A stretch of 64,000 nt of DNA, taken from positions 1-64,000 of the IMG/VR virus record IMGVR_UViG_3300041411_000080; one strand, written 5' to 3'. A program made the position numbers and the translations under genes. The notes under the pieces were generated by a model. It had not been told where the DNA came from. It saw nothing but the letters and a program-made list of their open reading frames with translations, and did no database searches. Numbering within the stretch: the first letter of the stretch is position 1; each line of letters begins with the position of its first letter. Positions 4,361 to 63,942 of the stretch are shown here, piece after piece.

Positions 4361-4834
4361 TTACTTCTGTGGTGGTGCTGCTGGCAAGAAGCTAATGGTT
4401 TGCTGGAGATAGCCCATGTCCTGGAGGTTGAATCGACCTTTATTAACCGGGTTATGTGCAATCTCACCAAATGAAAGAGTCGTGCCACCTGGATTGAGTG
4501 GTTGGCTCGAGACGCTGTTCTTAGTTACTGTGATGATCCAGCCATCGGCAATCACGACAACCGTCACATTGGTCTTACCGATGAAGTCACGAATATGATC
4601 GGCAGTCAGACAGGTTTTATCCTTGAGCTTATGCTCGATCTCCAGCAATGCATCGATGTGACCGATAGCGAAATAAGCTTGTACCTGTGGGCGGTCCCCG
4701 GTCTCGAACAGGTATTCAGAACGCATGCGTGGAGCGCCTTCAGCAGTTCTCAGTGCCTGAATAAAGGTTACATTGTCGTTAGCGCGATAACCGTAAACAA
4801 CACCTTGTGGTACAGCGTGAAGAATGAAAGACAT
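4361..4834 (-). CDS. hypothetical protein, possible Ntn-hydrolase/proteasome-beta-like fold
   Basis: MSFILH start, YFAIGHIDAL, VVVIADGWIITV, LSFGE pattern. Confidence 0.4.
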   Translation of the reverse strand: MSFILHAVPQGVVYGYRANDNVTFIQALRTAEGAPRMRSEYLFETGDRPQVQAYFAIGHIDALLEIEHKLKDKTCLTADHIRDFIGKTNVTVVVIADGWIITVTKNSVSSQPLNPGGTTLSFGEIAHNPVNKGRFNLQDMGYLQQTISFLPAAPPQK

Positions 4835-4843
4835 CTTGAATCC

Positions 4844-5011
4844 TTAGCGGTGAATGATCAGAGTAGACCAAGTGGATACGAGTAACAGAATGAGTGCAAC
4901 AGTCAGAACTTCACGACGGGCGGGAGCATGGCTCTTAAAGCACAATGCTAACCAGCCCATCCAAGTAATGATCGTAACAACCCACAACAGTCCGATGAGT
5001 GTAGGGTCCAT
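4844..5011 (-). CDS. 55-aa two-TM membrane protein (below ORF-track cutoff)
   Basis: MDPTLIGLLWVVTIITWMGWLALCF...VLTVALILLLVSTWSTLIIHR; AGGA SD; fills the gap exactly. Confidence 0.75.
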   Translation of the reverse strand: MDPTLIGLLWVVTIITWMGWLALCFKSHAPARREVLTVALILLLVSTWSTLIIHR

Positions 5012-5453: not shown

Positions 5454-5695
5454 GCCGTCTCCTTGGGTTTGATCGCCCGAATGTTAAAACCTTCAGGGAT
5501 GTCAGCAATCTTTTGACCGAGAGTGTTAACCCGGAAGAAGAAGTCATAACCGAAGAGATGTTTCTCTTCGTCATGCACCAGTTGCACACTACCGTCTTGA
5601 ATGTAGATGTCACGAGCTGGGAGGAACTTGTGACCATGCGAACGAGATTGGTAGATACCGTTCGGCACCGTTTGACCATTTAGTTCACGACTCAT
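5450..5695 (-). CDS. hypothetical protein (81 aa)
   Basis: ORF tiles in operon. Confidence 0.7.
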   Translation of the reverse strand: MSRELNGQTVPNGIYQSRSHGHKFLPARDIYIQDGSVQLVHDEEKHLFGYDFFFRVNTLGQKIADIPEGFNIRAIKPKETA

Positions 5696-5698
5696 TAC

Positions 5699-5887
5699 TT
5701 AATCCTTTTTGTAGTACTTCGATTTAAGACTGTCTGCCAAACCATAGTCCGGGTCACGTACGGGTTCAATCCCATCTGTTGTACCGGTCATGATACGAGG
5801 TGGTGCATGACGAGGCATTTCTGCTACTACACGAGTATTAGTAATGCCTGCCTTCAATACTTCTTCTCTTAACTTTTCCCAATTCAT
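5699..5887 (-). CDS. 62-aa stand-alone fragment of ribonucleotide reductase alpha (NrdA-like)
   Basis: NWEKLREEVLKAGITNTRVVAEMP...TGTTDGIEP matches the class Ia NrdA WE.LR..I...G..N....A.MP...T.GIEP segment; AGGAG SD before ATG 5887. Confidence 0.7.
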   Translation of the reverse strand: MNWEKLREEVLKAGITNTRVVAEMPRHAPPRIMTGTTDGIEPVRDPDYGLADSLKSKYYKKD

Positions 5888-5936: not shown

Positions 5937-6767
5937 TCAGTGTCGAACGGTTTCGATTTCGTGAGTGAGAGCCATAGTGACAACCGATTCGTGGAATGGG
6001 TTACGACGACTTATTTCATTATGCTTGTAATCACGCAGGGTGACCTGTAAAGGAAACTTACGATACCCGTTGTAGATCAACTTGGTGACGGCTTCGTTGG
6101 ACAACGGTTCTTCTGGTCGAACCCAACTCATTCCACTACGAGTTAGTTTGATCATAGTTCCGACATCGGTGATCAGATACATGGTTGCCCATGCACCCAG
6201 TGCTTCAGCAATGCGTTCCAGTTGTAGTTCAGTCATCCCTCCACACGCAAAATAGCTGGATTCGCGCACTTCCCGTTTTGCATGCTTGTAATGACGCATG
6301 GCATTACGAACACCAACACTACTACCAACGAACAGGATGTCTTTGATGACCAAGCCATGTGCTGGGTAACCACTGATGTCCCACGGGCGATTGCAAACGT
6401 CCTCGCCTTCGAACTGGATGATCTCATCACCGGGGGCAACCCAGATTGATGCACGGCCATCGCCATGTAACTTCAGCACGTGACGGGAATCAGCGTAACC
6501 GGGATTATGGCAGTCGAGTGCGTTATGGACGTTCTGGGTCTCAGCCATCTTTTCAAACGCGTGACGCAGTTCCCAACTAGGGAAGAAGATAACTGCCTCG
6601 TACAACCCTTTCGAGTTACGCGATGGTAAATCGACCCAACGAATGATGTCGACTTTCTTCTTACCATGGTGAGCTTTGTTGAGATCAGCCATTGTCCCAT
6701 GCAGTGCTACTAGGTAGGGAGCTGGGCAATCACGTTTAACGAACAACTGGTATACTCGACCGGACAT
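5937..6767 (-). CDS. hypothetical protein (276 aa)
   Basis: ORF tiles; C-half ILFVGSSVG / MYLITDVGTMIKL resembles 4361 and 5019. Confidence 0.75.
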   Translation of the reverse strand: MSGRVYQLFVKRDCPAPYLVALHGTMADLNKAHHGKKKVDIIRWVDLPSRNSKGLYEAVIFFPSWELRHAFEKMAETQNVHNALDCHNPGYADSRHVLKLHGDGRASIWVAPGDEIIQFEGEDVCNRPWDISGYPAHGLVIKDILFVGSSVGVRNAMRHYKHAKREVRESSYFACGGMTELQLERIAEALGAWATMYLITDVGTMIKLTRSGMSWVRPEEPLSNEAVTKLIYNGYRKFPLQVTLRDYKHNEISRRNPFHESVVTMALTHEIETVRH

Positions 6768-14734: not shown

Positions 14735-14959
14735 ATGCCCACTAAGAGTCCAGCTCAAGCCAGATTGATGCGTGCTGCTGCACATGATCCAGAGTTCGCC
14801 AAGAAAGTTAAGGTTCCACAAGAAGTAGCTAAAGAATTCGTTGATGCCGATAAGAAAGAAAAAGAGAAGGCTGAGAAAGACAAGAAAAAGAAAGCGGATA
14901 AGAAAGACGATCATCACACCAAGTCTAGTATTACCACTCGATACAAAAAAGAAGCATAA
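14735..14959 (+). CDS. small Lys-rich conserved phage protein (MPxKSxAQARLMxAAAHxPxFAKKV family)
   Basis: GAGG SD; recognisable N-terminal motif; converges on a hairpin; only convincing plus-strand gene. Confidence 0.75.
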   Translation: MPTKSPAQARLMRAAAHDPEFAKKVKVPQEVAKEFVDADKKEKEKAEKDKKKKADKKDDHHTKSSITTRYKKEA

Positions 14960-26098: not shown

Positions 26099-26194
26099 TT
26101 ATTCGTCAGTTGAAGGGGGTTGGACAGAAGTGGTACTGCCTGACAATAGCAGGCAGGTCACAATGAAGAGTACGATTATCCCGAATGTTACCAT
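26099..26194 (-). CDS. 31-aa single-TM microprotein
   Basis: MVTFGIIVLFIVTCLLLSGSTTSVQPPSTDE; start overlaps the upstream stop; fills the gap. Confidence 0.6.
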   Translation of the reverse strand: MVTFGIIVLFIVTCLLLSGSTTSVQPPSTDE

Positions 26195-26394
26195 TTTCGC
26201 ATCTTCCCACCTGAACCACGTTGATAGAAAGGCTGATCTTTGATCTTACGGTTAGTACGCTCACCGTGATCGTTTTTCATCTCACCTTTATACGCACTAC
26301 CCCAGTGTACACCGCAAAGCTCTTCCAGCTTATCCTTACCGCTTACTCGGCGACCGAAGTTACTGAGATGAATGTCTGACATTAGTCCAAGCAT
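26188..26394 (-). CDS. 68-aa protein with DHGERTN...KDQPFY.RG..GKM C-terminal module
   Basis: TAATG coupling; module shared with the next ORF. Confidence 0.75.
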   Translation of the reverse strand: MLGLMSDIHLSNFGRRVSGKDKLEELCGVHWGSAYKGEMKNDHGERTNRKIKDQPFYQRGSGGKMRKW

Positions 26395-39822: not shown

Positions 39823-40098
39823 TTATTGGTATTGGGTTCCAAGGTAATGCTCGTCCATATACTTATTCCAATCTTCAGCCACGGCCATCACGTTGTGGAG
39901 TCTGGTCGAGTTGTAATAAGCATTATTGTTAAACCGCATCACTTGTTTAAAGTCTTTGAGTGCTTTCTTCACACCCGCCGGACTAGGGTCTTTCCTGATG
40001 TCGTAAGCTACTTGACGAACGCAGTAATGCCATTCATCAAACTCCCCGTCTAGCTTACCCATCTTGTTGCGTATTCGTTGGTTATAGCCGTATTTCAT
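39823..40098 (-). CDS. hypothetical protein (91 aa)
   Basis: ATGA coupling. Confidence 0.75.
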   Translation of the reverse strand: MKYGYNQRIRNKMGKLDGEFDEWHYCVRQVAYDIRKDPSPAGVKKALKDFKQVMRFNNNAYYNSTRLHNVMAVAEDWNKYMDEHYLGTQYQ

Positions 40099-48240: not shown

Positions 48241-48898
48241 CTGTAATCTCCGGGTAGACGTGTTCACGAAATTCAGTGTAGCTCATGAATTCGTCGGTGG
48301 CATTGAAGTGGGTACTCCAAACGTTGTAATGGGTCCATGCGTCAACATACACTTCCTTACCGGCAGCGAATGCTGTCTCAACGGCAGAATCATAGATCGC
48401 TGTGCGGGCCATACGACGATTCATTGCAGCTAGTAGCTGGACTTTTTCATCCAGATACACGTACGCGAACTTCTTATCGTGGCGAGCAATGGACTTGGTA
48501 TTGGAGATCAGATCTGACAACTTCAGTTCCAGCGTCTTATCACAACGTGCCATTACGTGCGACCGGTCGATCCCTTTACGGACCGCACGGTTACCATCTT
48601 CTGGTGTGGAGATGTCGGTTACACCTTCAACCAGACGGGCAACTTCCTGACCGAATACTTGAGCGACGTGTGCCAGCGTTACGCTGGTATCTTCCACCAC
48701 GTCATGCAGAAGAATCGCTACCTGTTGCGCGATACTTGGTTCACAGTGCGTCAGGAGGATCTGTAATGCTTCCTCAGGATGATTATGGTAATCCTCGCCC
48801 GTGTACTTACGTTTCTGCCCGACAGCGGCATGAGCAGCGATACAGAAGGCCCTTGCCATTTCTACAACGGTGTAATCTCTAGGTGCTTGAGTGCGCAT
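48182..48898 (-). CDS. HD-domain (p)ppGpp-hydrolase-like protein (Mesh1/small alarmone hydrolase)
   Basis: AAH..GQKRKYTGEDY.NHP, LLHDVVEDT, FG.EVA.LV..VT, KLSD.ISN. Confidence 0.8.
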   Translation of the reverse strand: MRTQAPRDYTVVEMARAFCIAAHAAVGQKRKYTGEDYHNHPEEALQILLTHCEPSIAQQVAILLHDVVEDTSVTLAHVAQVFGQEVARLVEGVTDISTPEDGNRAVRKGIDRSHVMARCDKTLELKLSDLISNTKSIARHDKKFAYVYLDEKVQLLAAMNRRMARTAIYDSAVETAFAAGKEVYVDAWTHYNVWSTHFNATDEFMSYTEFREHVYPEITDVEESSLNSESSEQDQPNV

Positions 48899-49068
48899 TA
48901 GTCATCCTTCATTACGTGTTCAGCCCAACGTCTAAGGAAGTCCGCAAAAGGGCTACTGTAGGTTTCTCTGAAAGATACCCGTACCCAGCGTTTTGGATTG
49001 TACTTATCGTTAAGCTTGAGGCGATGTTTTAGTTTGGTCTTAAACCAGTGCCGACTTTGTTTTGCCAT
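48898..49068 (-). CDS. 56-aa basic peptide MAKQSRHWFKTKLKHRLK...
   Basis: TAATG overlaps at both ends. Confidence 0.7.
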   Translation of the reverse strand: MAKQSRHWFKTKLKHRLKLNDKYNPKRWVRVSFRETYSSPFADFLRRWAEHVMKDD

Positions 49069-52595: not shown

Positions 52596-53055
52596 ACCCC
52601 TTTACAGTAGTGTAGTGCTTTACATTTCCGATGGGGGCGCATTTAACAGCCTTAACCAGTAGGTCACCTTGTTTGTGTGCATCACCCCAAGCAGTTACCA
52701 AACCAGTTTTATGATCCTCATGTTCGAGCAACCATTCGGCTGCACGCTTGAGTAGTTCGTCATGATCCCAATGATGGAAACCAATCTTACCATGGTAGAC
52801 TTCTTTTGGTTCCCAACGCCACAGACGATCTTCGAAATCGTAAGGAGCACGTTTAACCATTACTTCTACCAACAACTTCCAACAGTAGGGTTGATCATCG
52901 GCAAACTTGTCTTCTTCAGGGGACAGATAGATCTCAAGAAGATTTCCACCGACACAACGTTCCATCAAGTGGACGCGACTATTGGAGTTACCGCCATAGC
53001 TGAGTTCCAATTTCATGGATCGGCTAAAAGAACGGATGATGTCAATGTGCTTCAT
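52582..53055 (-). CDS. hypothetical protein (157 aa)
   Basis: AAGGA SD; ATGA coupling. Confidence 0.75.
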   Translation of the reverse strand: MKHIDIIRSFSRSMKLELSYGGNSNSRVHLMERCVGGNLLEIYLSPEEDKFADDQPYCWKLLVEVMVKRAPYDFEDRLWRWEPKEVYHGKIGFHHWDHDELLKRAAEWLLEHEDHKTGLVTAWGDAHKQGDLLVKAVKCAPIGNVKHYTTVKGFEDE

Positions 53056-53213
53056 TTAAGTATCCTTGGTCGCAGAGATTTGATTTGCTTGATTAGATCG
53101 TTACGATAATAACGCTGACTAATATTAGCCTTAACCCGTTCAGCATGCTCCACTGTGAAGTAATGGTGTAAGTTTTCGTAGATCCAGTTGTGTTCCCATT
53201 GTAGCGGATTCAT
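53052..53213 (-). CDS. 53-aa peptide MNPLQWEHNWIYENLHHY...
   Basis: start overlaps the 53210 stop and the stop overlaps the 53055 start; AAGGA SD. Confidence 0.7.
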   Translation of the reverse strand: MNPLQWEHNWIYENLHHYFTVEHAERVKANISQRYYRNDLIKQIKSLRPRILK

Positions 53214-55945: not shown

Positions 55946-56233
55946 TCAATGGTTTTCATTTACACGATGTTTGTTACGCTCGTCGTTTTTGGCTGACCAC
56001 TTGCCCGCTAACGTAGAACGACATTCAGCACCGTCACCCTCACGGAAGAATTCAGAGTAGCCACCTTCACGACGATTTCGCATTAGCTTTACAGGTTCGT
56101 AATCTCGGATTGAGGGATTACTCTTTGATAGATCGAATCCATCCATGCCACCCAGTTCAATATGAACCATAGGTACTTCTGGAACCGTTCTGTGTTCATA
56201 TCGGAAACACTTACCTCCAAACTTCCTACTCAT
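55946..56233 (-). CDS. charged peptide, array A (95 aa)
   Basis: AGGAG SD; R/E/G-rich; no hydrophobic run. Confidence 0.75.
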   Translation of the reverse strand: MSRKFGGKCFRYEHRTVPEVPMVHIELGGMDGFDLSKSNPSIRDYEPVKLMRNRREGGYSEFFREGDGAECRSTLAGKWSAKNDERNKHRVNENH

Positions 56234-56472
56234 GTAGGTCTCCTACTACCATAGTCGTTTTCAGCAAAACTACTTAATCGTGGGTCATTCCAACAACTTG
56301 TACGCCACCCTTCGTGAATTGGTCTGGTATCGAGATCATAACCATTCCCCCGTCTATGTTTGGCATTGATCCCACCGTGGTACCGGTGGCGCATTGCTAT
56401 ATGAGGTTCTAATGAACGAAAAATTACCTTATTACGGTCTAGCTGCCAAGCCTCCCCTAAGTATTTAACCAT
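56230..56472 (-). CDS. charged peptide, array A (80 aa)
   Basis: coupled at both ends; R/H/G-rich. Confidence 0.7.
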   Translation of the reverse strand: MVKYLGEAWQLDRNKVIFRSLEPHIAMRHRYHGGINAKHRRGNGYDLDTRPIHEGWRTSCWNDPRLSSFAENDYGSRRPT

Positions 56473-56785
56473 TGTGTCTACTCTGGTCTGTATCAGTGTA
56501 GTGCGACCATACCGTAGTAGCTAGGTTATGTCGTTCAGCATCGGGTGTCCATTGTTCATCGAACGCTTTGTCTGACTCGTACAACTCACGGGTTGATGAA
56601 CAACACTGCATACTCAGTTCGTCTTCAGGGTTGCGCCGATCTCTATCGATAACCCATTTGATATTGGCTATAGGACCCAAGGGGTAGAAATAGGCATGTA
56701 TGTCTGTATCGCCGTCTATACCTCGACCCATCGCTGGATGGCACTTACCCTTATAGTACTTCTCACGTGCGATGTTATTCCGCAT
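56465..56785 (-). CDS. charged peptide, array A (106 aa)
   Basis: SD present; D/R-rich. Confidence 0.75.
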   Translation of the reverse strand: MRNNIAREKYYKGKCHPAMGRGIDGDTDIHAYFYPLGPIANIKWVIDRDRRNPEDELSMQCCSSTRELYESDKAFDEQWTPDAERHNLATTVWSHYTDTDQSRHNG

Positions 56786-56789
56786 AGTT

Positions 56790-57005
56790 TCACTCTCTTC
56801 CAGTAATACCGCTAGCGTTACGTAGTTCTATACCGACGACACGGGCCCATCTGAATTGATTGCTACGTAGGCATTTATTGAGTGGTTCACTAGAGCGTTC
56901 ATGGCGAATGTCTTCAGGTTCATTACGAATAATGAACCCGCCTCGATCGGAATCACGTCTATTACCTAGCGGTTTGGTTTCAACCTTCCGAGTCGATGGT
57001 TTCAA
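56790..57005 (-). CDS. charged peptide, array A (71 aa)
   Basis: overlaps the 3' end of the QueC-like gene; R-rich. Confidence 0.65.
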   Translation of the reverse strand: MKPSTRKVETKPLGNRRDSDRGGFIIRNEPEDIRHERSSEPLNKCLRSNQFRWARVVGIELRNASGITGRE

Positions 57006-57765
57006 GTTTGTACTCCGGCGGACATTTGTAATAGTCGTAACTCGGATAACGAATGTCTACATACGAGCACTTACCCACATGTTGCATGACACGTTGTTCT
57101 GCCCGATCTGTACAGTATGGACCTTTACGTTGTGCTCTAGCCACAGCTCGCCATACCGTTTCTTCGTGTTTCTGTTTGTATTGATAAAGTGTTAGGTTAG
57201 CCAACATACAGGGAGAGCACTTCTGACAGGCTTTACCCTCAGATGGCATTTCACATACCCACACCATCGGTAGCAGTCGCTTATCAATCTCCTCAAGCAC
57301 GTTGAGTTTGGTCATATGTAGCAATGGGAACTCTAGTGGGATTGGATCACCATGAAAGCCATGCTTCAACATGCTGTTCCACTGGTCTTCAACATGCTGG
57401 AGGTGTTTACCGAAGTATGCCCCATCACTGTCGACATAAGCCACGCGAACACAACTGTGACGTTTTGCATCCAGTACACGATACGCGCCTTGCATCCAAG
57501 AATTTGGTTGATTCCACTTTTTACTTTGACCATCATGGAGATAGACCGGTTGCAAGATCTCATACTGACGTTGAATCTTGTTGGGGTATTCACGGTTCAT
57601 GAACTCAATCAAACGATCCCGAGCTTCCAACTCAAGTTTCATTTTCTCTTGTGCTTGTCCGCCGTTTACGTACAGAATATCAATCGGACCATCTTCAGCC
57701 AACATATAAGAAACGAGGTAGGTAGAATCCATACCACCCGACAACAACACCAATGGAACTTTCAT
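56980..57765 (-). CDS. divergent QueC-like PP-loop ATPase
   Basis: LLSGGMDST, GQ...E, FPLL..TK, WVC...C..C..C Zn motif; lacks QueC VP.RN and YPDC. Confidence 0.8.
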   Translation of the reverse strand: MKVPLVLLSGGMDSTYLVSYMLAEDGPIDILYVNGGQAQEKMKLELEARDRLIEFMNREYPNKIQRQYEILQPVYLHDGQSKKWNQPNSWMQGAYRVLDAKRHSCVRVAYVDSDGAYFGKHLQHVEDQWNSMLKHGFHGDPIPLEFPLLHMTKLNVLEEIDKRLLPMVWVCEMPSEGKACQKCSPCMLANLTLYQYKQKHEETVWRAVARAQRKGPYCTDRAEQRVMQHVGKCSYVDIRYPSYDYYKCPPEYKLETIDSEG

Positions 57766-57791
57766 AGCTACTCCAAAAAGAAAATATGAAA

Positions 57792-57809
57792 GGGGAGCCG
57801 AAGCTCCCC
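57792..57809 (-). terminator. intrinsic terminator, cUUCGg loop
   Basis: GGGGAGC-TTCG-GCTCCCC-TTTCAT. Confidence 0.75.
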
Positions 57810-57815
57810 AGTCAA

Positions 57816-58949
57816 TTAAGCGGCGAAACCCATACCTGTTTTCTGATGACCTTCACCAACCTCGTGAGCATTGATAGCCTCAGCGAGAGTAATGTCAGTA
57901 CGACCTTCTTTGAACTCGAACGGATCGATCGACATCATGTCACGGATATCGTTAGCCTGTTCGTTGTTCAGGTTCTGGAACTTCAGTACACGGAAGCAAC
58001 GGCCCGGACGCAGCAGAGCATCATCGATATCACGGGTGGAGGTCAAGTTGGTGCAGATGATCAGCTTGATGTCACGTGCCACGATACCAGCGGTAGCGTT
58101 GAGCAGAGCCGACATCGAGACGTTACCTTCAGTACGCTTCTTAACCAGAATATCCGCGTCTTCGGTGAGTACGATGGAACCAGCTGGCAGTTCACGGATG
58201 AAGTCAGGGAAGCCTGGGTGACCCAGTACGTCCATACGGTCAGCCAGATAGATCTTATCATCCCAACCACGGGCGTTGATAACTTCCATCATCCAGTTCG
58301 ACTTACCAGTACCCGGTACACCGTAGATCAGTGCAACGTTGGAATTCGAAACCGAGAACTCTTTGAAGAACTCTGCTGGAGTGAAGTTGAAGTACGGGTA
58401 GAACTTGTTGACATCCAGTACATCACGGTTACCTTGAATGGTTTCCATAACAGTGCACAGGTTGCCTTGGCCGTCTACACGAATACGGGTCAGGTAACGA
58501 GTAGGGGTAGCGTTCAGGTGCTTGGTGAACTCTTCTTTGAACCACTGACAGAATACTGGCAGACCGAGTACGTCATAGGTCGACTTAGTAGCAGTAACCG
58601 ATGGGTTAACGAAGGCACCGATGATGTGGGTATCGGAAACGATTACACGACCCATTACGCAACGGATCATACGCAGACCAGCTTTAGCCAGAATGTCTTC
58701 AGACACTACGCGAGTAACGTCGTTAGCCGATTCTTCTTTGGTACCACCGTGAGGAATGTCGACCAACAGTTCATGCTGTTCCGAATGTTGACCTTGGGTG
58801 GAGAAGTACAGACGCACTACGTCGTAGATGTTATCACCACGCAGTAGTTCCAGTTTGGAGTTGAAGATCTCCATACGAGCTTTCAGTTCTGGAGTGATGC
58901 CGTTGAATTCAGCGAGGTTAGCGGCGTCTTGCATTTCGATAAAGTTCAT
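57816..58949 (-). CDS. AAA+ ATPase (BCS1-like) with N-terminal domain
   Basis: Walker A YGVPGTGKS, Walker B LTEDAD, sensor ICTN, SRH DDALLRPGR. Confidence 0.9.
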   Translation of the reverse strand: MNFIEMQDAANLAEFNGITPELKARMEIFNSKLELLRGDNIYDVVRLYFSTQGQHSEQHELLVDIPHGGTKEESANDVTRVVSEDILAKAGLRMIRCVMGRVIVSDTHIIGAFVNPSVTATKSTYDVLGLPVFCQWFKEEFTKHLNATPTRYLTRIRVDGQGNLCTVMETIQGNRDVLDVNKFYPYFNFTPAEFFKEFSVSNSNVALIYGVPGTGKSNWMMEVINARGWDDKIYLADRMDVLGHPGFPDFIRELPAGSIVLTEDADILVKKRTEGNVSMSALLNATAGIVARDIKLIICTNLTSTRDIDDALLRPGRCFRVLKFQNLNNEQANDIRDMMSIDPFEFKEGRTDITLAEAINAHEVGEGHQKTGMGFAA

Positions 58950-58974
58950 TGCGTTTTCCTTTGTTTAAATTGGA

Positions 58975-59205
58975 TTAGTAAGTCATTCTTTCAACGATGG
59001 CATCGTCGATATGTACAAGTTCACGGGTACGGGAATCTACACGGTTAGCTCGGGGCGCTCGCGGTACGTCTTCACCGGTACGTTTAGAGGGTCCGATATG
59101 CGGTTTATTGCGTACGTCTACGAGATCGATCGCACAACCCTGACCAGTTACTTCAGGTTTGATGTTGTGCTTTCTCGTCCATGCGTCTGGTTCAGCTCTT
59201 CGCAT
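58975..59205 (-). CDS. charged peptide, array B (76 aa)
   Basis: AGGTGA SD; R/D-rich. Confidence 0.75.
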   Translation of the reverse strand: MRRAEPDAWTRKHNIKPEVTGQGCAIDLVDVRNKPHIGPSKRTGEDVPRAPRANRVDSRTRELVHIDDAIVERMTY

Positions 59206-59212
59206 ATGTCAC

Positions 59213-59509
59213 CTAGAGTGATGTACGGAGAAAGGTGGATGCGTGATTGGACATGTCCTTAAATCGTCGGTTCAGATCTCGAGTAAACCCCGCTTGGTCA
59301 TTATGACGAACCTCAGGAACACCCTCCTCGCCCCAACTGTGGCGATCAGCTTCACGCCGAAAGTTGTAGTAGGATTCATCATGTTGCCGCCAGAAGAGGA
59401 TGTCAGAATCACACAACTGTTCAGGATGCATCGGGTCATCCTCCCGAGAGAAGCTGGCGTACTGGCGCTCTCTTTGGTTACGGCCTTCCGATTTTAAGAA
59501 TCGCACCAC
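59213..59509 (-). CDS. charged peptide, array B (about 98 aa)
   Basis: GAGGA SD; R/D/E-rich. Confidence 0.7.
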   Translation of the reverse strand: MVRFLKSEGRNQRERQYASFSREDDPMHPEQLCDSDILFWRQHDESYYNFRREADRHSWGEEGVPEVRHNDQAGFTRDLNRRFKDMSNHASTFLRTSL

Positions 59510-59748
59510 TCATCCTCCCGTTTCTCTATACGTCTATCTAGGGTCTGTTTATCGATATCGAGCCGTTCTTCATCGTCTTCTTCATTAATAGAACGATGAG
59601 CCCAACTTCGGTCAAGTGGTCCGCGAACAACGCCCGGACACCATTCCCACTCAGCCTCCGGTGTTGTGTTTCCGTAACGAACATAATCCAACGTTTCTTC
59701 GTCGTAGGAAAATGGATCGTTAGGGTCATGCATAACGTGTTCGCGCAT
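59494..59748 (-). CDS. charged peptide, array B (84 aa)
   Basis: AAGGTGA SD; D/E/R-rich; WCPGVVRGP. Confidence 0.75.
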   Translation of the reverse strand: MREHVMHDPNDPFSYDEETLDYVRYGNTTPEAEWEWCPGVVRGPLDRSWAHRSINEEDDEERLDIDKQTLDRRIEKREDEWCDS

Positions 59749-59756
59749 AGATCACC

Positions 59757-60026
59757 TTAACAAACTAGTTCTTCATGATCTTGATCAGGTCGGTACATGT
59801 CACCATCGTCACTTGGTGGTTCCACACGTTCTCGAAGTCGATCAGGAACATAGGTGCTGGTACGGTGAACCGGGGCTAGCTTACGCTCACCTATACGCTT
59901 GTCGTTCGTTTGGCTAAACGGAATAGTCGTATCTCGATCAGGACGAGTAACGACTTTACGGTTAACTAGGGATGGTTCACCTTTACGCATTACTTCAGGT
60001 CCTGACTCAAGATCACGATGAACCAT
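59757..60026 (-). CDS. charged peptide, array B (about 89 aa)
   Basis: ORF tiles; R/D/P-rich. Confidence 0.7.
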   Translation of the reverse strand: MVHRDLESGPEVMRKGEPSLVNRKVVTRPDRDTTIPFSQTNDKRIGERKLAPVHRTSTYVPDRLRERVEPPSDDGDMYRPDQDHEELVC

Positions 60027-60577
60027 TTGGAGAAACCATTACCGCGATTAACGATACGCAGGTTCTTCCACAAGTCGGGCCGGATGGCCGACTCACGCAA
60101 CTTAACGATTTCGTCTTGTTCCATCCAGCCTGGGAAACTGAACTTAGCCGACCGCGCTACTGCACGATCGTCATGAGGGTCAGTACTAACACCAGCTTGC
60201 ATCTGTCCTGCACCAGTGATGTTATCCACTGGAGTAAAAGCCTCATTGAAGTTATGATCGGACAGCACAGTGATAATACTAAGTGCTGAAGTCGGTTCAC
60301 CTACCTCATAGAAGTCAGGAGGGGGCAGCGATGGCAACTCAGGTTCTTTTGGGGCTACTACGTGATCCACCAATGGAATCACTGAGTACGTGTCAGCTTC
60401 CGCGCCATAGATCGTTCGATCAATGAGGTGCCGGGTCATGTGTTCACGCGCTTCAGTAAAAGACGTAAAGGTTTTACCCTTATCCGACGTAGCCGCCAGA
60501 GTACCGTCTTCTTTAAGGAACGAAATCCGTGCTCCGCAAACGGTCATGATTGCGAAGCGTTGATCTAATGGATGCAT
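59990..60577 (-). CDS. hypothetical protein (195 aa)
   Basis: GAGGT SD. Confidence 0.8.
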   Translation of the reverse strand: MHPLDQRFAIMTVCGARISFLKEDGTLAATSDKGKTFTSFTEAREHMTRHLIDRTIYGAEADTYSVIPLVDHVVAPKEPELPSLPPPDFYEVGEPTSALSIITVLSDHNFNEAFTPVDNITGAGQMQAGVSTDPHDDRAVARSAKFSFPGWMEQDEIVKLRESAIRPDLWKNLRIVNRGNGFSKWFIVILSQDLK

Positions 60578-60586
60578 ATCTACCTC

Positions 60587-61489
60587 TTAGGAATCGAAAC
60601 CAAATACCATCCGCACTTCACCATACTTCTCGTGAAGACGTTTTACTTCATCGGTGAAGTAAGCGAACTCTTTATTGATTGCAGCATTATCCAGAGTCCA
60701 CTGACAACGAATGTTCAGTTTCTCTACGCGCCCGGCATAACGTCTAAGTTTAGCCAGATGCTTAAGCGCCGATTTCTTACGTTTAACTACACGTTGGCGA
60801 ACGATCTTCTCGACTTTAGGTACATGACGGAAGTTTCCTGGACGATCGAGGATACTCCACGAATCATGTTGGTAGTCTGGATGATCAGGGACCATTTTCT
60901 TAACGTGACGTCGAACCCAGCGGATTTTCTTCTGTGCTTCGTCAACTTCATTCAGAATATGCATGGCATAAGACTGACTACGGATTTTCTCCGGTGTCAA
61001 CTGCGATTGGTCAATAGTAATCTGTTTACCACCCCAGATACCACCACACCAACTTTCAGGTTGAGAGACTTTATCCCACTTGACGTACTGATCCATGGTG
61101 AGAACGCCACGTTTATGGACTGGATTGAAATGCTTGGTACCTTCCAGAATCTCAGTACTGGTCAACCAGCTAAAAGAATGATCGCCGAAACTACCACCGC
61201 ATTTATAATACTCTTCCCAGTCAGGGGCCTTCCAGTCCCAACGAGATTTTGGCTCTTCACGTTTCACAAGGTCCTCAGGTAATCCCCGTGGCTCAGCCAA
61301 AGGTTTGATTGAATCCCCAGTATCAGTACCGCCGAAGCCATAACCGTTACGAACGTTGGCCAACCAACCGAACAAGAAGTAGTGGCGGTTACCTTCGTAT
61401 TTATGATCCGTGATATATTCCCAACTGTCTTCAGCTGGGGTAGACCCCAGTACTTTACGTTGGAACGCTGGATGAACATCAGTACCCAT
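60587..61489 (-). CDS. conserved phage protein (MGxDxH...R.Y.LF..LA.VRN family) with an insertion
   Basis: MGTDVH, RHYFLFGWLANVRN, RGLPED, HSFSWL, RMVFGFDS. Confidence 0.75.
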   Translation of the reverse strand: MGTDVHPAFQRKVLGSTPAEDSWEYITDHKYEGNRHYFLFGWLANVRNGYGFGGTDTGDSIKPLAEPRGLPEDLVKREEPKSRWDWKAPDWEEYYKCGGSFGDHSFSWLTSTEILEGTKHFNPVHKRGVLTMDQYVKWDKVSQPESWCGGIWGGKQITIDQSQLTPEKIRSQSYAMHILNEVDEAQKKIRWVRRHVKKMVPDHPDYQHDSWSILDRPGNFRHVPKVEKIVRQRVVKRKKSALKHLAKLRRYAGRVEKLNIRCQWTLDNAAINKEFAYFTDEVKRLHEKYGEVRMVFGFDS

Positions 61490-61499
61490 GAATTACCCC

Positions 61500-61868
61500 T
61501 TAGTTAATGTGAAGATGTTTTTCGCGAGTTACTTTGGAAGGAACGTGTTTGAATTCCACTTTCAGGAAACGTTCCAACAGTTTGATGGCTTTAGCATCGT
61601 CGACGTAACGCAGGCAATCGCCATTGTATTGCTCAACGGTCAGATTACCCCACAACAGTTCGATGACCGTATGGATACCATCCATAGGACCACTGTAGTT
61701 AAGACTCATGGTCCCTTTAGCCGTAACACCGATCGTAAACCAAGTGTTGTCATTACGCAGGGTCTTATTGACTCGACCAGACTTACTACTGGATTTATTC
61801 TGGTAATACGTACCGATGGTCAACAGACGACGACCGAGTTTGGTCTTTGGATCGATCTTACGCAGCAT
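61500..61868 (-). CDS. basic hypothetical protein (122 aa)
   Basis: AAGGT SD. Confidence 0.75.
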   Translation of the reverse strand: MLRKIDPKTKLGRRLLTIGTYYQNKSSSKSGRVNKTLRNDNTWFTIGVTAKGTMSLNYSGPMDGIHTVIELLWGNLTVEQYNGDCLRYVDDAKAIKLLERFLKVEFKHVPSKVTREKHLHIN

Positions 61869-61869
61869 G

Positions 61870-62301
61870 TTATTTACCTTTTCGTTTTTTGAACTGTTCC
61901 CAGAAACAGATTATGAGTTGGAGCCAGACCACGATAGTGAGGCCGTAAACGAGCAATGGCCCGAAGAACCAATAAAGGTTATCACGCGGTGTTTGCTTTA
62001 TATCGAACTGACGAAGGTTTAAGGTAAGCTTTTCACCCAAGTGCATTTGTCGATACATGTACCCACTTATCTCTCGGTCAAATACGTAACCACTCTCTGT
62101 TTTAAACAGCCCTTCTAATCGTGCTGTACAACTATGCTTACCACAAGCCTGTACCGTATATTTGTCGATGAAAGTAACCGGTACGTCTTGATGTTTCATG
62201 TAGACGTTATTATTCCAAACATAGACCGACCAAGAACTAAGAGTGATGATTAGAAACAATAAGAAAAGACCACTGATATTAAATGTAGATTTACTTGACA
62301 T
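61870..62301 (-). CDS. membrane protein with TMs at both ends (143 aa)
   Basis: two TMs flanking a soluble loop with CGKHSC. Confidence 0.75.
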   Translation of the reverse strand: MSSKSTFNISGLFLLFLIITLSSWSVYVWNNNVYMKHQDVPVTFIDKYTVQACGKHSCTARLEGLFKTESGYVFDREISGYMYRQMHLGEKLTLNLRQFDIKQTPRDNLYWFFGPLLVYGLTIVVWLQLIICFWEQFKKRKGK

Positions 62302-62337
62302 GATTAAACACTCTTAGTGGATAAGTATTGCCCGTCT

Positions 62338-62357
62338 ATGATATAAATCTGAACTTT
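62338..62357 (-). promoter_or_regulatory. phiKZ-type early promoter
   Basis: AAAGTTCAGATTTATATCAT. Confidence 0.75.
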
Positions 62358-62360
62358 TTT

Positions 62361-62582
62361 CTATTGCTCATCAACTGGACCACGCTTGAATTCCATGTTA
62401 GTCCAGCTGTCATCTTCATCCATTTCAGCTCGACCGTCAACCCAATGACAGTTACGCTGTTCTTCACCTGCACCTAAAGGTCTCCGGGCTTCGGCCTTAC
62501 GAATGGTTGTGATATTGTGTTCGGATAACCTTGGGAACACCCCTCTAGCAAATAGGGTTGGTATGCAGTCACGTTTAAACAT
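62361..62582 (-). CDS. charged peptide, array C (73 aa)
   Basis: AAGGT SD; ends WTNMEFKRGP... Confidence 0.75.
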   Translation of the reverse strand: MFKRDCIPTLFARGVFPRLSEHNITTIRKAEARRPLGAGEEQRNCHWVDGRAEMDEDDSWTNMEFKRGPVDEQ

Positions 62583-62585
62583 TGA

Positions 62586-62795
62586 TCAGACCTTATATAA
62601 CCCACGTTTTATATCTGTGTCCCATATGTACCGATCTATATCCTTCCGGTAGTCATCTGCTCCACAGGTCTCATCATCAAATAACCGCCTACCTTCTAGA
62701 GGTCGGTATTCCGTCACACATCGTTCAAAGATTACATGACGTCTTTGGTCAGAGCTACGGTCATTTAAACCAACCCCCTGATAGTCTCTACTCAT
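62586..62795 (-). CDS. charged peptide, array C (69 aa)
   Basis: GGTGA SD; ends WDTDIKRGL... Confidence 0.75.
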   Translation of the reverse strand: MSRDYQGVGLNDRSSDQRRHVIFERCVTEYRPLEGRRLFDDETCGADDYRKDIDRYIWDTDIKRGLYKV

Positions 62796-62796
62796 A

Positions 62797-63039
62797 TCAC
62801 CACCACTTGTTGTCTATCAAACCCCGTTGAACATCTGTAGCCCAATCTAATTTATTTTGATCTGTACGGACACCGCTAAGATCGTCGCCATCTAACTCAG
62901 TGGTCATCTTTAACCCTTCCGGTTGGATACGTGGATGATCACTCTTACCGCGCTCACCGAACATGCGATAATCCGTTTTCTTATCCTTGATATCCACAGG
63001 TGATGTCGCGCCTGCGGTTTTATCTGAAGTTCTGCCCAT
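62797..63039 (-). CDS. charged peptide, array C (80 aa)
   Basis: ends WATDVQRGL... Confidence 0.75.
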   Translation of the reverse strand: MGRTSDKTAGATSPVDIKDKKTDYRMFGERGKSDHPRIQPEGLKMTTELDGDDLSGVRTDQNKLDWATDVQRGLIDNKWW

Positions 63040-63050
63040 GGGTCGATTAC

Positions 63051-63245
63051 TCAGTAAGTTAAATGTGATGGTCGTTCACAATCAAGTTTTGGATTAGATA
63101 TATCGAAGACAACTGGGCGCCAACTGACATGTTCGGGATTGGAGCGATTACCACTGTCTCTTAAGGATGCTCGTCCACCGACGGTTACATGTCGTCCCGG
63201 CATTAGTCTGGTGTCGAGATAGGTATCTTCTTGCTCTCTACTCAT
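63051..63245 (-). CDS. charged peptide, array C (64 aa)
   Basis: start overlaps the upstream stop; R/D/S-rich. Confidence 0.7.
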   Translation of the reverse strand: MSREQEDTYLDTRLMPGRHVTVGGRASLRDSGNRSNPEHVSWRPVVFDISNPKLDCERPSHLTY

Positions 63246-63421
63246 CGGAAGCGTCTCTCATTAACGTTAGGTTCATCATTGGTTCTAGAAACGTTTGTAT
63301 CTAGATGTACAAACTCACGGTAACCTTCACCCTTACGTTTGAGTCGCTCCGAGGACAATCCTTGTAGGCGATGAATAACCACATTACCGCGTCCATATTC
63401 TGAATTATAATCTAGTTTCAT
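63242..63421 (-). CDS. charged peptide, array C (59 aa, start MKLDY)
   Basis: GAGG SD before ATG 63421. Confidence 0.7.
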   Translation of the reverse strand: MKLDYNSEYGRGNVVIHRLQGLSSERLKRKGEGYREFVHLDTNVSRTNDEPNVNERRFR

Positions 63422-63452
63422 TGTAAACCTCATTTGTTAGTGGCGGCATAAA

Positions 63453-63470
63453 GCTTCCCCGAAGGGAAGC
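63453..63470 (-). terminator. intrinsic terminator, cUUCGg loop
   Basis: GCTTCCC-TTCG-GGGAAGC-TTTAT. Confidence 0.75.
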
Positions 63471-63496
63471 AGTATACCCATTAGATTAGATAAGCC

Positions 63497-63637
63497 TAAT
63501 GAAAGTCGAAGAAGCACGTAGTTAGGTACTGACGTTAGCTCCCGCTAATGTTCTTAACGTACCAGGTCACCTATGGCTGGATCACCCCCTTGAACGCAGT
63601 GCGTATTTGCACGGACTGCTTCTTGACTATACCATTA
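63497..63637 (-). ncRNA. candidate structured non-coding RNA
   Basis: ORF-free gap between two terminators; end-to-end helix UAAUG..AGUCAAGAAGCA / UGCUUCUU-C-GACU..CAUUA enclosing several hairpins; strand inferred. Confidence 0.5.
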
Positions 63638-63679
63638 CACTCAGAGTATTCTTTTAACCAAAAAAAGAAAAGGTATAAC

Positions 63680-63705: not shown

Positions 63706-63942
63706 TTATTCTAAGGTGAAGTTTCGGTATAACACAATGTCTTGCTCCAAATCGATAACGGTGTAGTACTTTGCGAACTCGTTATCGATCGGTAAATCGT
63801 AATTGTGATCTACCCATGCTTCCATCTCCTTCTGGGTATTGAAAGAGATCTTAACATAGTGCGTAGGACAGGTACGACCTGGACCCCATGACCGAAGTTT
63901 ATATTCGGCTTCAAACAATGGTTTAACGACTTTATTCTGCAT
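63706..63942 (-). CDS. hypothetical protein (78 aa)
   Basis: AAGGA SD. Confidence 0.75.
   Translation of the reverse strand: MQNKVVKPLFEAEYKLRSWGPGRTCPTHYVKISFNTQKEMEAWVDHNYDLPIDNEFAKYYTVIDLEQDIVLYRNFTLE

Follow-up and report, generated by a model that had tools for sequence, protein, structure and literature searches.

The stretch of DNA examined here (the window, 64,000 nucleotides in full) is the first 64 kb of the uncultured viral contig IMGVR_UViG_3300041411_000080 (320,858 bp), and coordinates of the window and the contig coincide. Nearly all of its genes lie on the minus strand, and among them are three arrays of small open reading frames (ORFs), which we designate A, B, and C. An earlier reading of the letters alone (the sequence-only reading) had pointed to 13 minus-strand ORFs of 59-106 amino acids (aa) in three arrays, and we find them at essentially the coordinates given there. 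The source is an uncultured chimallivirus-like jumbo phage of the Pseudomonas type, related to Pseudomonas phage Phabio; its AAA ATPase is 54% identical to the Phabio counterpart and 37% identical to phiKZ gp208. The arrays occupy three fixed slots of one long minus-strand operon: array C comes after a conserved small-RNA element, array B lies upstream of the AAA gene, and array A lies between the AAA and QueC-like genes and an adjoining capsid-decoration gene, a homolog of PhiKZ_gp244 recognized by Pfam. In the direction of transcription, a 78-aa gene with its terminator is followed by the small-RNA element, C1-C5, and genes of 143, 122, 300, and 195 aa; then come B1-B4, the AAA gene with a terminator-like hairpin, the QueC-like gene, A1-A4, and the gp244-like gene with its terminator. 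In that order, the array ORFs are as follows (pI, isoelectric point; dN/dS, ratio of nonsynonymous to synonymous substitution rates; L numbers designate loci in related phages).

C1: 63242..63421, minus strand; 59 aa; basic (pI 10 for the 63-aa form); C-terminal EPNVNERR[FY]R conserved; dN/dS 0.05
C2: 63051..63245, minus strand; 64 aa; found only in the nearest relative, L007 (92%), and missing from L003 and L010; dN/dS 0.27
C3: 62797..63039, minus strand; 80 aa; C-terminal motif W-x-T-D-[VI]-Q-R-G-L-I-D-x-[KR]-W-W
C4: 62586..62795, minus strand; 69 aa; tandem paralog of C3; missing from L003
C5: 62361..62582, minus strand; 73 aa; C-terminal FKRGPVDEQ conserved; 96% in L007 and 52% in L010
B1: 59757..59990, minus strand; 77 aa; start overlaps the stop of the preceding 195-aa gene; weak paralog of B4; dN/dS 0.19
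B2: 59494..59748, minus strand; 84 aa; strongly acidic (net charge -14), four Trp; homolog in L014 (E=1e-8); dN/dS 0.18-0.27
B3: 59213..59509, minus strand; 98 aa; most widely conserved family, with RED-x-P-x-HPE-x-LCD-x-DIL-x-WR ... VR-x-ND; dN/dS 0.07-0.13
B4: 58975..59205, minus strand; 76 aa; conserved C-terminal RTRELVHIDDAI-x-ER; missing from L010; dN/dS 0.06
A1: 56790..57005, minus strand; 71 aa; TTG start (ATG in L003); overlaps the last 26 nucleotides (nt) of the QueC-like gene; basic, pI 10.7
A2: 56465..56785, minus strand; 106 aa; 37 invariant columns across eight homologs; dN/dS 0.12-0.13
A3: 56230..56472, minus strand; 80 aa; tandem paralog of A4; missing from L003; allele-like divergence, 51% in L007
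A4: 55946..56233, minus strand; 95 aa; second widely conserved family, with KFGGKCF ... LGG-x-DGF ... MR-x-RREGG; dN/dS 0.02-0.03

Each array measures about 1.05 kb (about 1055 nt) and is almost entirely filled. Of the length of each array, a fraction of 0.98-0.99 falls within same-strand ORFs of 59 aa or more; the mean in 1000 Markov shuffles was 0.14-0.19, and no shuffle came as high as the real sequence. Consecutive ORFs meet in overlaps of 4-8 nt or are separated by gaps of a few nt, and a Shine-Dalgarno (SD)-like motif precedes 12 of the 13 starts, compared with 24% of all ATGs on the minus strand (binomial P=4e-7, with a motif set that was picked after inspecting the sequences). Head-to-tail tiling with SD motifs or overlaps, as had been described from sequence alone, is thus borne out by both the shuffles and the motif count. 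For B1, the start was revised to the ATG at 59990 used in relatives, although the ORF is open to 60026. C1 is likewise open to 63433, but a start at 63421 is most likely, as GAGG stands 7 nt before this ATG and the gene call in a relative agrees.

The ORFs are found intact, all 13 of them, among the related metagenomic phages L003, L007, L008, L009, and L010, in which the gene calls were made independently by the source pipelines. L003, whose AAA protein is 88% identical, keeps 10 of the 13 with the same order, starts, and stops; its flanking genes align with the window by blastn at 76-89% DNA identity, whereas the arrays are mostly not alignable. Orthologs of C1, for example, are 47% identical in L003 and 98% in L007. 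In unsaturated comparisons, substitutions at codon positions 1, 2, and 3 number 69, 49, and 205 (P about 1e-29), and dN/dS of the array genes is 0.02-0.27, compared with 0.03-0.18 for flanking genes. Codon usage is broadly phage-like, but shifted toward A-ending codons. It could still be argued that the ORFs are non-functional, as chance or decaying spacer ORFs, as fragments of larger genes, or as by-products of a locus whose real product is RNA. Protein language models "recognize" the proteins poorly and predict no fold for them, codon-usage scores are negative for A3, C2, and C4, and G+C content at third codon positions (0.29-0.53) extends below that of reference genes (0.49). Set against this are the excess of third-position substitutions, dN/dS values well below 1, and the persistence of intact ORFs across deep divergence. 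Moreover, a single broken or read-through gene per array is ruled out, as every frame contains 11-34 stops and the ORFs change frame at each junction. The arrays hold no tRNA genes (ARAGORN, 0), no Rfam families at gathering thresholds (0), and no DNA repeats between arrays beyond chance seeds, and the array ORFs have no tblastx similarity to larger Phabio genes. We therefore give the non-functional explanation next to no credence and regard it as effectively refuted by the comparative data. It is close to certain that the 13 ORFs are genuine, translationally coupled genes, each under purifying selection.

The encoded proteins are strikingly alike in composition. All 13 have a grand average of hydropathy (GRAVY) between -0.95 and -1.45, and relative to reference genes they are enriched in R (2.2-fold), D (1.6-fold), E (1.25-fold), and P (1.2-fold) and depleted in A, Q, F, V, I, and L (to 0.56-0.68-fold). 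The claim of the sequence-only reading that these peptides are rich in R, D, E, and P and poor in hydrophobic residues holds, but G, W, C, and H are merely 1.14-1.17-fold above reference genes. Net charge is near zero in most of the proteins, with extremes of -14 (B2) and +6 (A1). Elsewhere in the window, GRAVY falls below -0.9 in 5 scattered small ORFs among about 118; these lie at 14735-14959 on the plus strand and at 26188-26394, 39823-40098, 48898-49068, and 53052-53213 on the minus strand, and they are isolated and Lys-rich, not Arg-rich. In a charge-hydropathy plot, the array proteins (13 of 13) lie on the side of the boundary that is typical of disorder, and structure prediction gave no confident fold: AlphaFold2 (AF2) returned a predicted local distance difference test (pLDDT) score of 36.7 for A2 (alignment of 8 sequences) and 57.2 for B3 (13 sequences), neither a usable model, and ESM Atlas models of A2 and A4 have pLDDT values of 0.36 and 0.38. 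Disorder prediction, which had been proposed as a check when the arrays were first pointed out, thus comes down on the disordered side. Each family nonetheless has sharply conserved motifs built from R, D, E, G, P, W, H, and single Cys residues, including one invariant Cys each in A2, A4, and B3. From this combination we infer that the proteins may be largely disordered alone and structured on a partner.

The 13 proteins form about 10 unrelated families. All-against-all BLASTP and hhalign comparisons revealed only three paralogous pairs, namely A3-A4 (E=2e-4; hhalign 80%), C3-C4 (E=7e-4; hhalign 57.5%), and, weakly, B1-B4 (hhalign 40%); C3 also matches an L010 ORF (hhalign 87.7%). Paralogy within arrays only points to tandem duplication, and a scheme in which the arrays are duplicated cassettes of one another was discarded on the same grounds. 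Beyond close relatives, homologs are few. None of the 13 proteins matched Pfam or PHROGs, nor did any of the seven run against PADLOC, and these searches (PADLOC for seven proteins, PHROGs and Pfam for 13) accordingly returned no known defense or anti-defense family. A tblastn search with A2 and B3 against 50,697 GenBank phage records gave nothing credible. In billions of metagenomic proteins there are seven homologs of A2 and eight of A4, while an exhaustive profile search of 1.84 billion representative proteins with B3 gave 10 clusters at 50% identity. One further protein from the B3 search, P0026 (799 aa), was rejected as an unrelated low-complexity repeat protein. Look-alikes in the ESM Atlas score 0.52-0.81, below the 0.9 that counts as more than a lead. 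We also found no description of these arrays in literature on Phabio, on small or disordered chimallivirus proteins, on jumbo-phage QueC, or on chimallivirus AAA+ ATPases and gp208.

Comparison with relatives shows that the arrays turn over quickly: genes are duplicated in tandem (A3/A4, C3/C4, B1/B4), are gained or lost, and are individually exchanged for divergent alleles. In L007, for example, the AAA protein, A4, and the gp244-like protein are 95-99% identical to their window counterparts, whereas the QueC-like protein is 85%, A1 54%, A2 84%, and A3 51% identical. The divergent genes (QueC-like and A1-A3) make up a mosaic block, window 56230-57765 against L007 9021-10559, with genes on both sides that are 95-100% identical; a divergent block inside near-identical flanks indicates recent allelic replacement by recombination. 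Gene presence varies as well, with L003 missing A3, C2, and C4, and L010 missing B4. Whole-gene insertions and deletions also occur beside the arrays: the 78-aa gene (window 63706-63942) is missing in L007, and in L007 (4339-4916) and L008 the 143-aa and 122-aa genes are separated by two additional genes (65 and 126 aa). Clade members at a greater distance (L014/L015, L016/L017, and L018; AAA 75-77% identical) have hyper-hydrophilic small ORFs in the same slots and retain B3, A4, B2, and a C3-like gene, but otherwise differ in content; A4 matches L016 at E=3e-17 and L018 at E=1e-11, and C3 has a weak match in L016. In Phabio, all three slots again hold arrays of like composition, and tblastn, tblastx, and hhalign found no homology between the window families and Phabio small ORFs. 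In L021 and L022 (AAA 48% identical), AAA is preceded by five to seven ORFs that are hydrophilic and paralogous to one another, and phages like phiKZ, PS119XW, and 201phi2-1 have no arrays. The array families are fast-evolving accessory genes confined to a narrow uncultured clade, and the variable small-gene content between conserved syntenic genes matches what defines a hyperplastic region.

We favor a reading in which the array proteins would be disordered binders or effectors whose diversification is driven by the host, and we give it about even chances; the effector role itself is much less certain than the standing of the ORFs as real genes in a hyperplastic region. This much of the sequence-only reading survives: an arsenal in which every binder would have a target of its own appears to be the most economical account of these sequences. 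According to this proposal, the proteins would act stoichiometrically, each binding a different macromolecule of host or phage through its conserved charged and aromatic motifs and probably folding in the process. As a group, the proteins could constitute a diversifying set of host-takeover or counter-defense effectors, comparable to the small genes of T4-type hyperplastic regions, and they would not be precursors processed by the QueC-like enzyme. Several points weigh against this proposal. We infer the binder or effector role from composition, pattern of conservation, and evolutionary dynamics. The low AF2 confidence could also stem from the shallowness of the alignments (8 and 13 sequences). 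Leu codons are atypical in the 13 ORFs, with CTA and TTA at 57% compared with 15% in reference genes, and CTG at 5% compared with 29%. B3 and A4 are conserved across the wider clade at fixed positions, which would equally fit a housekeeping phage function. Finally, every slot occupant in four lineages is hyper-hydrophilic, which a generic insertion hotspot does not explain; such uniformity hints at a shared mechanism, possibly related to the AAA ATPase, that lies outside the binder proposal.

As a kind of feature, hyperplastic small orphan accessory genes are familiar from large phages; it is their composition that is unusual here. Hyperplastic regions of T4-type phages consist of small ORFs, mostly early and specific to a lineage, that cluster between conserved core genes. 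The arrays resemble them in being tandem, tightly packed, same-strand orphan small ORFs whose content differs among close relatives, with single-gene replacement. They differ from the T4-type regions in that every occupant is hyper-hydrophilic and predicted to be disordered, and in that the arrays hold the same three slots throughout the clade, with B3 and A4 conserved at fixed positions. A close parallel is found in Phabio, where ORFs annotated as hypothetical (PHABIO_299-300, 302-306, and 309-311) fill the same three positions with respect to the small-RNA element, AAA (PHABIO_308), and the gp244-like gene, have the same size range, are charged, Arg-rich, and poor in hydrophobic residues, and include an internal paralogous pair (305/306, hhalign 96%). 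Unlike the window, Phabio has an RNA ligase gene between array and AAA, has no QueC-like gene, and has sequence-unrelated ORFs. Lambda N (107 aa, with an arginine-rich motif) is similar in size, Arg enrichment, predicted disorder, and fold-on-binding logic, but the array proteins share no sequence similarity with it and have no N-terminal arginine-rich motif of that type, and there are 13 different proteins here as opposed to one regulator.

In jumbo-phage genomes, no other part is as poorly understood as the small orphan genes. These arrays stand out among such genes, as all their proteins are hyper-hydrophilic and predicted to be disordered, all are under purifying selection, and all reside in three fixed slots of one operon. 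They provide a defined, testable set of candidate host-takeover or counter-defense effectors. In addition, Phabio has been cultured, its host being a harmless laboratory strain (P. fluorescens SBW25), and has the same architecture, so that a direct test is possible.

Other explanations turn on the neighbors of the arrays, which are the following.

57816..58949, minus strand: classic-clade AAA ATPase (phiKZ gp208 family); Walker A motif GVPGTGKS; a neighbor, possibly linked to the arrays
57792..57809, minus strand: terminator-like hairpin between the AAA and QueC-like genes; GGGGAGC-TTCG-GCTCCCC followed by a T-rich tail
56980..57765, minus strand: QueC-like PP-loop protein; SGGMDS loop and C-terminal Cys cluster; a neighbor, not linked to the arrays

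Pfam supports the two protein assignments, as it does those made in the sequence-only reading, and the structured intergenic RNA candidate that had been noticed upstream of array C is indeed conserved. The AAA protein scores 32.1 bits against the Pfam AAA model (cutoff 21.2), and its GVPGTGKS motif is invariant. The QueC-like protein scores 38.9 bits against Pfam QueC (cutoff 22), and it has both the PP-loop (SGGMDS, residues 9-14) and a Zn-binding Cys cluster (C-x9-C-x2-C-x2-C, near residue 170-190). It reaches 24 bits against the TIGR00364 QueC equivalog model, far from the cutoff of 150.3, and has no sequence match in the PDB; it is best described as a divergent QueC-family protein. The hairpin, a strong one, divides a unit running from array C through array B to AAA from a unit of QueC-like gene, array A, and gp244-like gene, so that the two ATPase genes may sit in different transcription units.

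The main rival to the binder proposal is a partnership with the AAA ATPase, in which the array proteins, at least those of the slot upstream of AAA, would be clients, adaptors, or regulators of an AAA unfoldase and would, for instance, be threaded, delivered, or recycled. We consider this unlikely, although it deserves to be taken seriously. The AAA protein belongs to the classic clade and lies closest to substrate-threading members, its best PDB matches being proteasomal Rpt subunits (Rpt2, Rpt6), Bcs1, and Cdc48. A hydrophilic array lies upstream of AAA in four lineages, namely the window clade (nine contigs), L021, L022, and Phabio (with the RNA ligase in between), but all these genomes are collinear here, and a collinear gene order makes adjacency weak evidence that is not independent. 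The sequence-only reading had linked the arrays to both ATPases; on the AAA side, the four lineages are offset by phiKZ-like and PS119XW-like phages, in which AAA, a widespread gene, occurs and functions without any array. Arrays A and C, moreover, do not adjoin AAA. At every locus examined, B3 is in the AAA-upstream array, either next to AAA or with one or two small ORFs in between. The units of L021 (4515-5976) and L022 (4047-5960) all have M-x(3-6)-RKK at the N-terminus; the synonymous codons for this motif vary, which marks it as a motif of the peptide. At both loci, the last unit is in frame with the AAA ORF, and no stop separates the two. However, a strong SD sequence (AAGGAG) precedes an internal AAA start in L022, so the "fusion" there may be read-through of the upstream ORF. 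In addition, the window families have no detectable homology to the RKK units, and a B3 hidden Markov model was not significant against those of L021 and L022. A broad AAA-based scan of viral contigs was swamped by the generic P-loop pattern and yielded two informative loci. If a partnership does exist, AAA might thread or deliver array proteins across a phage-built compartment, or perhaps use them to capture different host targets, and L021 and L022, where an in-frame RKK unit stands at the AAA N-terminus, would preserve a Rosetta-stone trace of it. The fuller version, that in the Phabio-related clade a gp208-family AAA acquired a dedicated, fast-diversifying repertoire of disordered proteins as clients or adaptors, strikes us as distinctly doubtful. 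The arrays also pose a concrete question about the gp208-family AAA ATPase, an unstudied enzyme of nucleus-forming phages.

The sequence-only reading had favored a different partner, proposing that the peptides are precursors or conjugation substrates, akin to those of ribosomally synthesized and post-translationally modified peptides (RiPPs), which the QueC-like enzyme adenylates and modifies and which are processed with help from the AAA+ ATPase. Such a scheme finds a basis in array A, which comes right after the QueC-like gene with a 26-nt overlap in a common terminator-bounded unit, in the single divergent recombination block that runs from QueC through A3 relative to L007, in the intact PP-loop motif and Cys cluster, and in the invariant Cys of A2, A4, and B3. 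RiPP clusters with multiple precursors likewise have several short ORFs beside an ATP-dependent enzyme of a carboxylate-adenylating superfamily. The co-occurrence of QueC and arrays fails both ways, however: L016, L018, and Phabio have hydrophilic arrays in the same slots but lack QueC, and PS119XW has QueC but no arrays, so that the QueC link fails the refutation test that had been set for it, namely linkage of arrays and ATPases in relatives. Nor do the arrays look like RiPP precursors. All-against-all BLASTP and hhalign found no shared N- or C-terminal segment among the 13 that might serve as a leader, purifying constraint extends along most of each family's length in place of a conserved leader and variable core, and, with lengths of 59-106 aa and about 10 unrelated families, the group does not resemble multi-copy precursors. 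Conservation does not extend to the C-terminal Gly of A2, and no protease, transporter, RiPP recognition element, or other RiPP-associated family was found near the arrays, either in Pfam and PHROG scans of the neighbors or in the precomputed Pfam annotation of the relatives. The RiPP-like reading and its tie to QueC are therefore not supported, and we hold them to be highly improbable; as a caution, adjacency to a PP-loop enzyme should not be read as a RiPP system. Arg-rich RNA-binding or chaperone proteins, acting with the small RNA or with nearby RNA-repair or modification enzymes (RtcB, RNA ligase, Thg1-like, QueC-like), would account for the 2.2-fold enrichment of Arg and the mixed charge, and the position of array C directly after the conserved RNA element, matched in Phabio by the hydrophilic PHABIO_299 and 300, and a region rich in RNA-repair genes fit with this. 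We think such a role improbable, as the RNA element occurs in 201phi2-1 and Viktualia without hydrophilic arrays, several members are strongly acidic (B2, net -14), and the searches turned up neither a known RNA-binding domain nor an arginine-rich motif family. Alternatively, perhaps the proteins are packaged in the capsid and ejected with the DNA, like the T4 internal proteins, to act at once. T4 IPI-III are small, charged products of polymorphic tandem loci of a large myovirus, and one of them counters host defense. The array proteins share the small size, the charge, and the polymorphic tandem loci, array A shares a transcription unit with the gp244-like capsid-decoration gene, and R stands at position 2 or 3 in nine of the 13. 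Yet we do not take the latter as a targeting sequence, a dibasic N-terminal motif being present in only five of 13; unlike IPI-III, the array proteins have no common N-terminal capsid-targeting sequence, and most are near neutral and not basic. A candidate protease site, S/A/G-x-E, is also not conserved within the A2 family, and on balance packaging is decidedly improbable.

The structured small-RNA candidate that precedes array C (window ~63448-63655, minus strand) is about 190-200 nt long. It is bounded on one side by the terminator of the 78-aa gene and on the other by a terminator hairpin of its own, after which comes an invariant TTTATGCCG. The candidate is also present in L003 (~5510-5790), L001/Phabio (~4620-4900), L012/201phi2-1 (~5940-6250), and L013/Viktualia, with 78-89% DNA identity across otherwise divergent Pseudomonas chimalliviruses (about 80% to 201phi2-1 and Viktualia). 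RNAalifold predicts 66 pairs, 19 of them with compensatory changes; the element has no Rfam match even at E<=1 and no annotation in 201phi2-1. It could be a free small RNA or a 5' leader or attenuator of the array C operon.

On the plus strand, a 353-aa ORF (57786-58847) runs antisense to AAA and recurs in L003 (398 aa); we regard it as a shadow ORF and not as an independent gene. Farther away, window ~27100-52000 is dense in RNA-repair and nucleotide-salvage genes, including those for RtcB, an RNA ligase, a Thg1-like protein, an HD domain protein, a DprA-like protein, NAPRTase, a phosphoribosyltransferase, thymidylate synthase, and an NAD-dependent DNA ligase. The RNA ligase gene that stands beside AAA in Phabio is found ~30 kb from AAA in the window.

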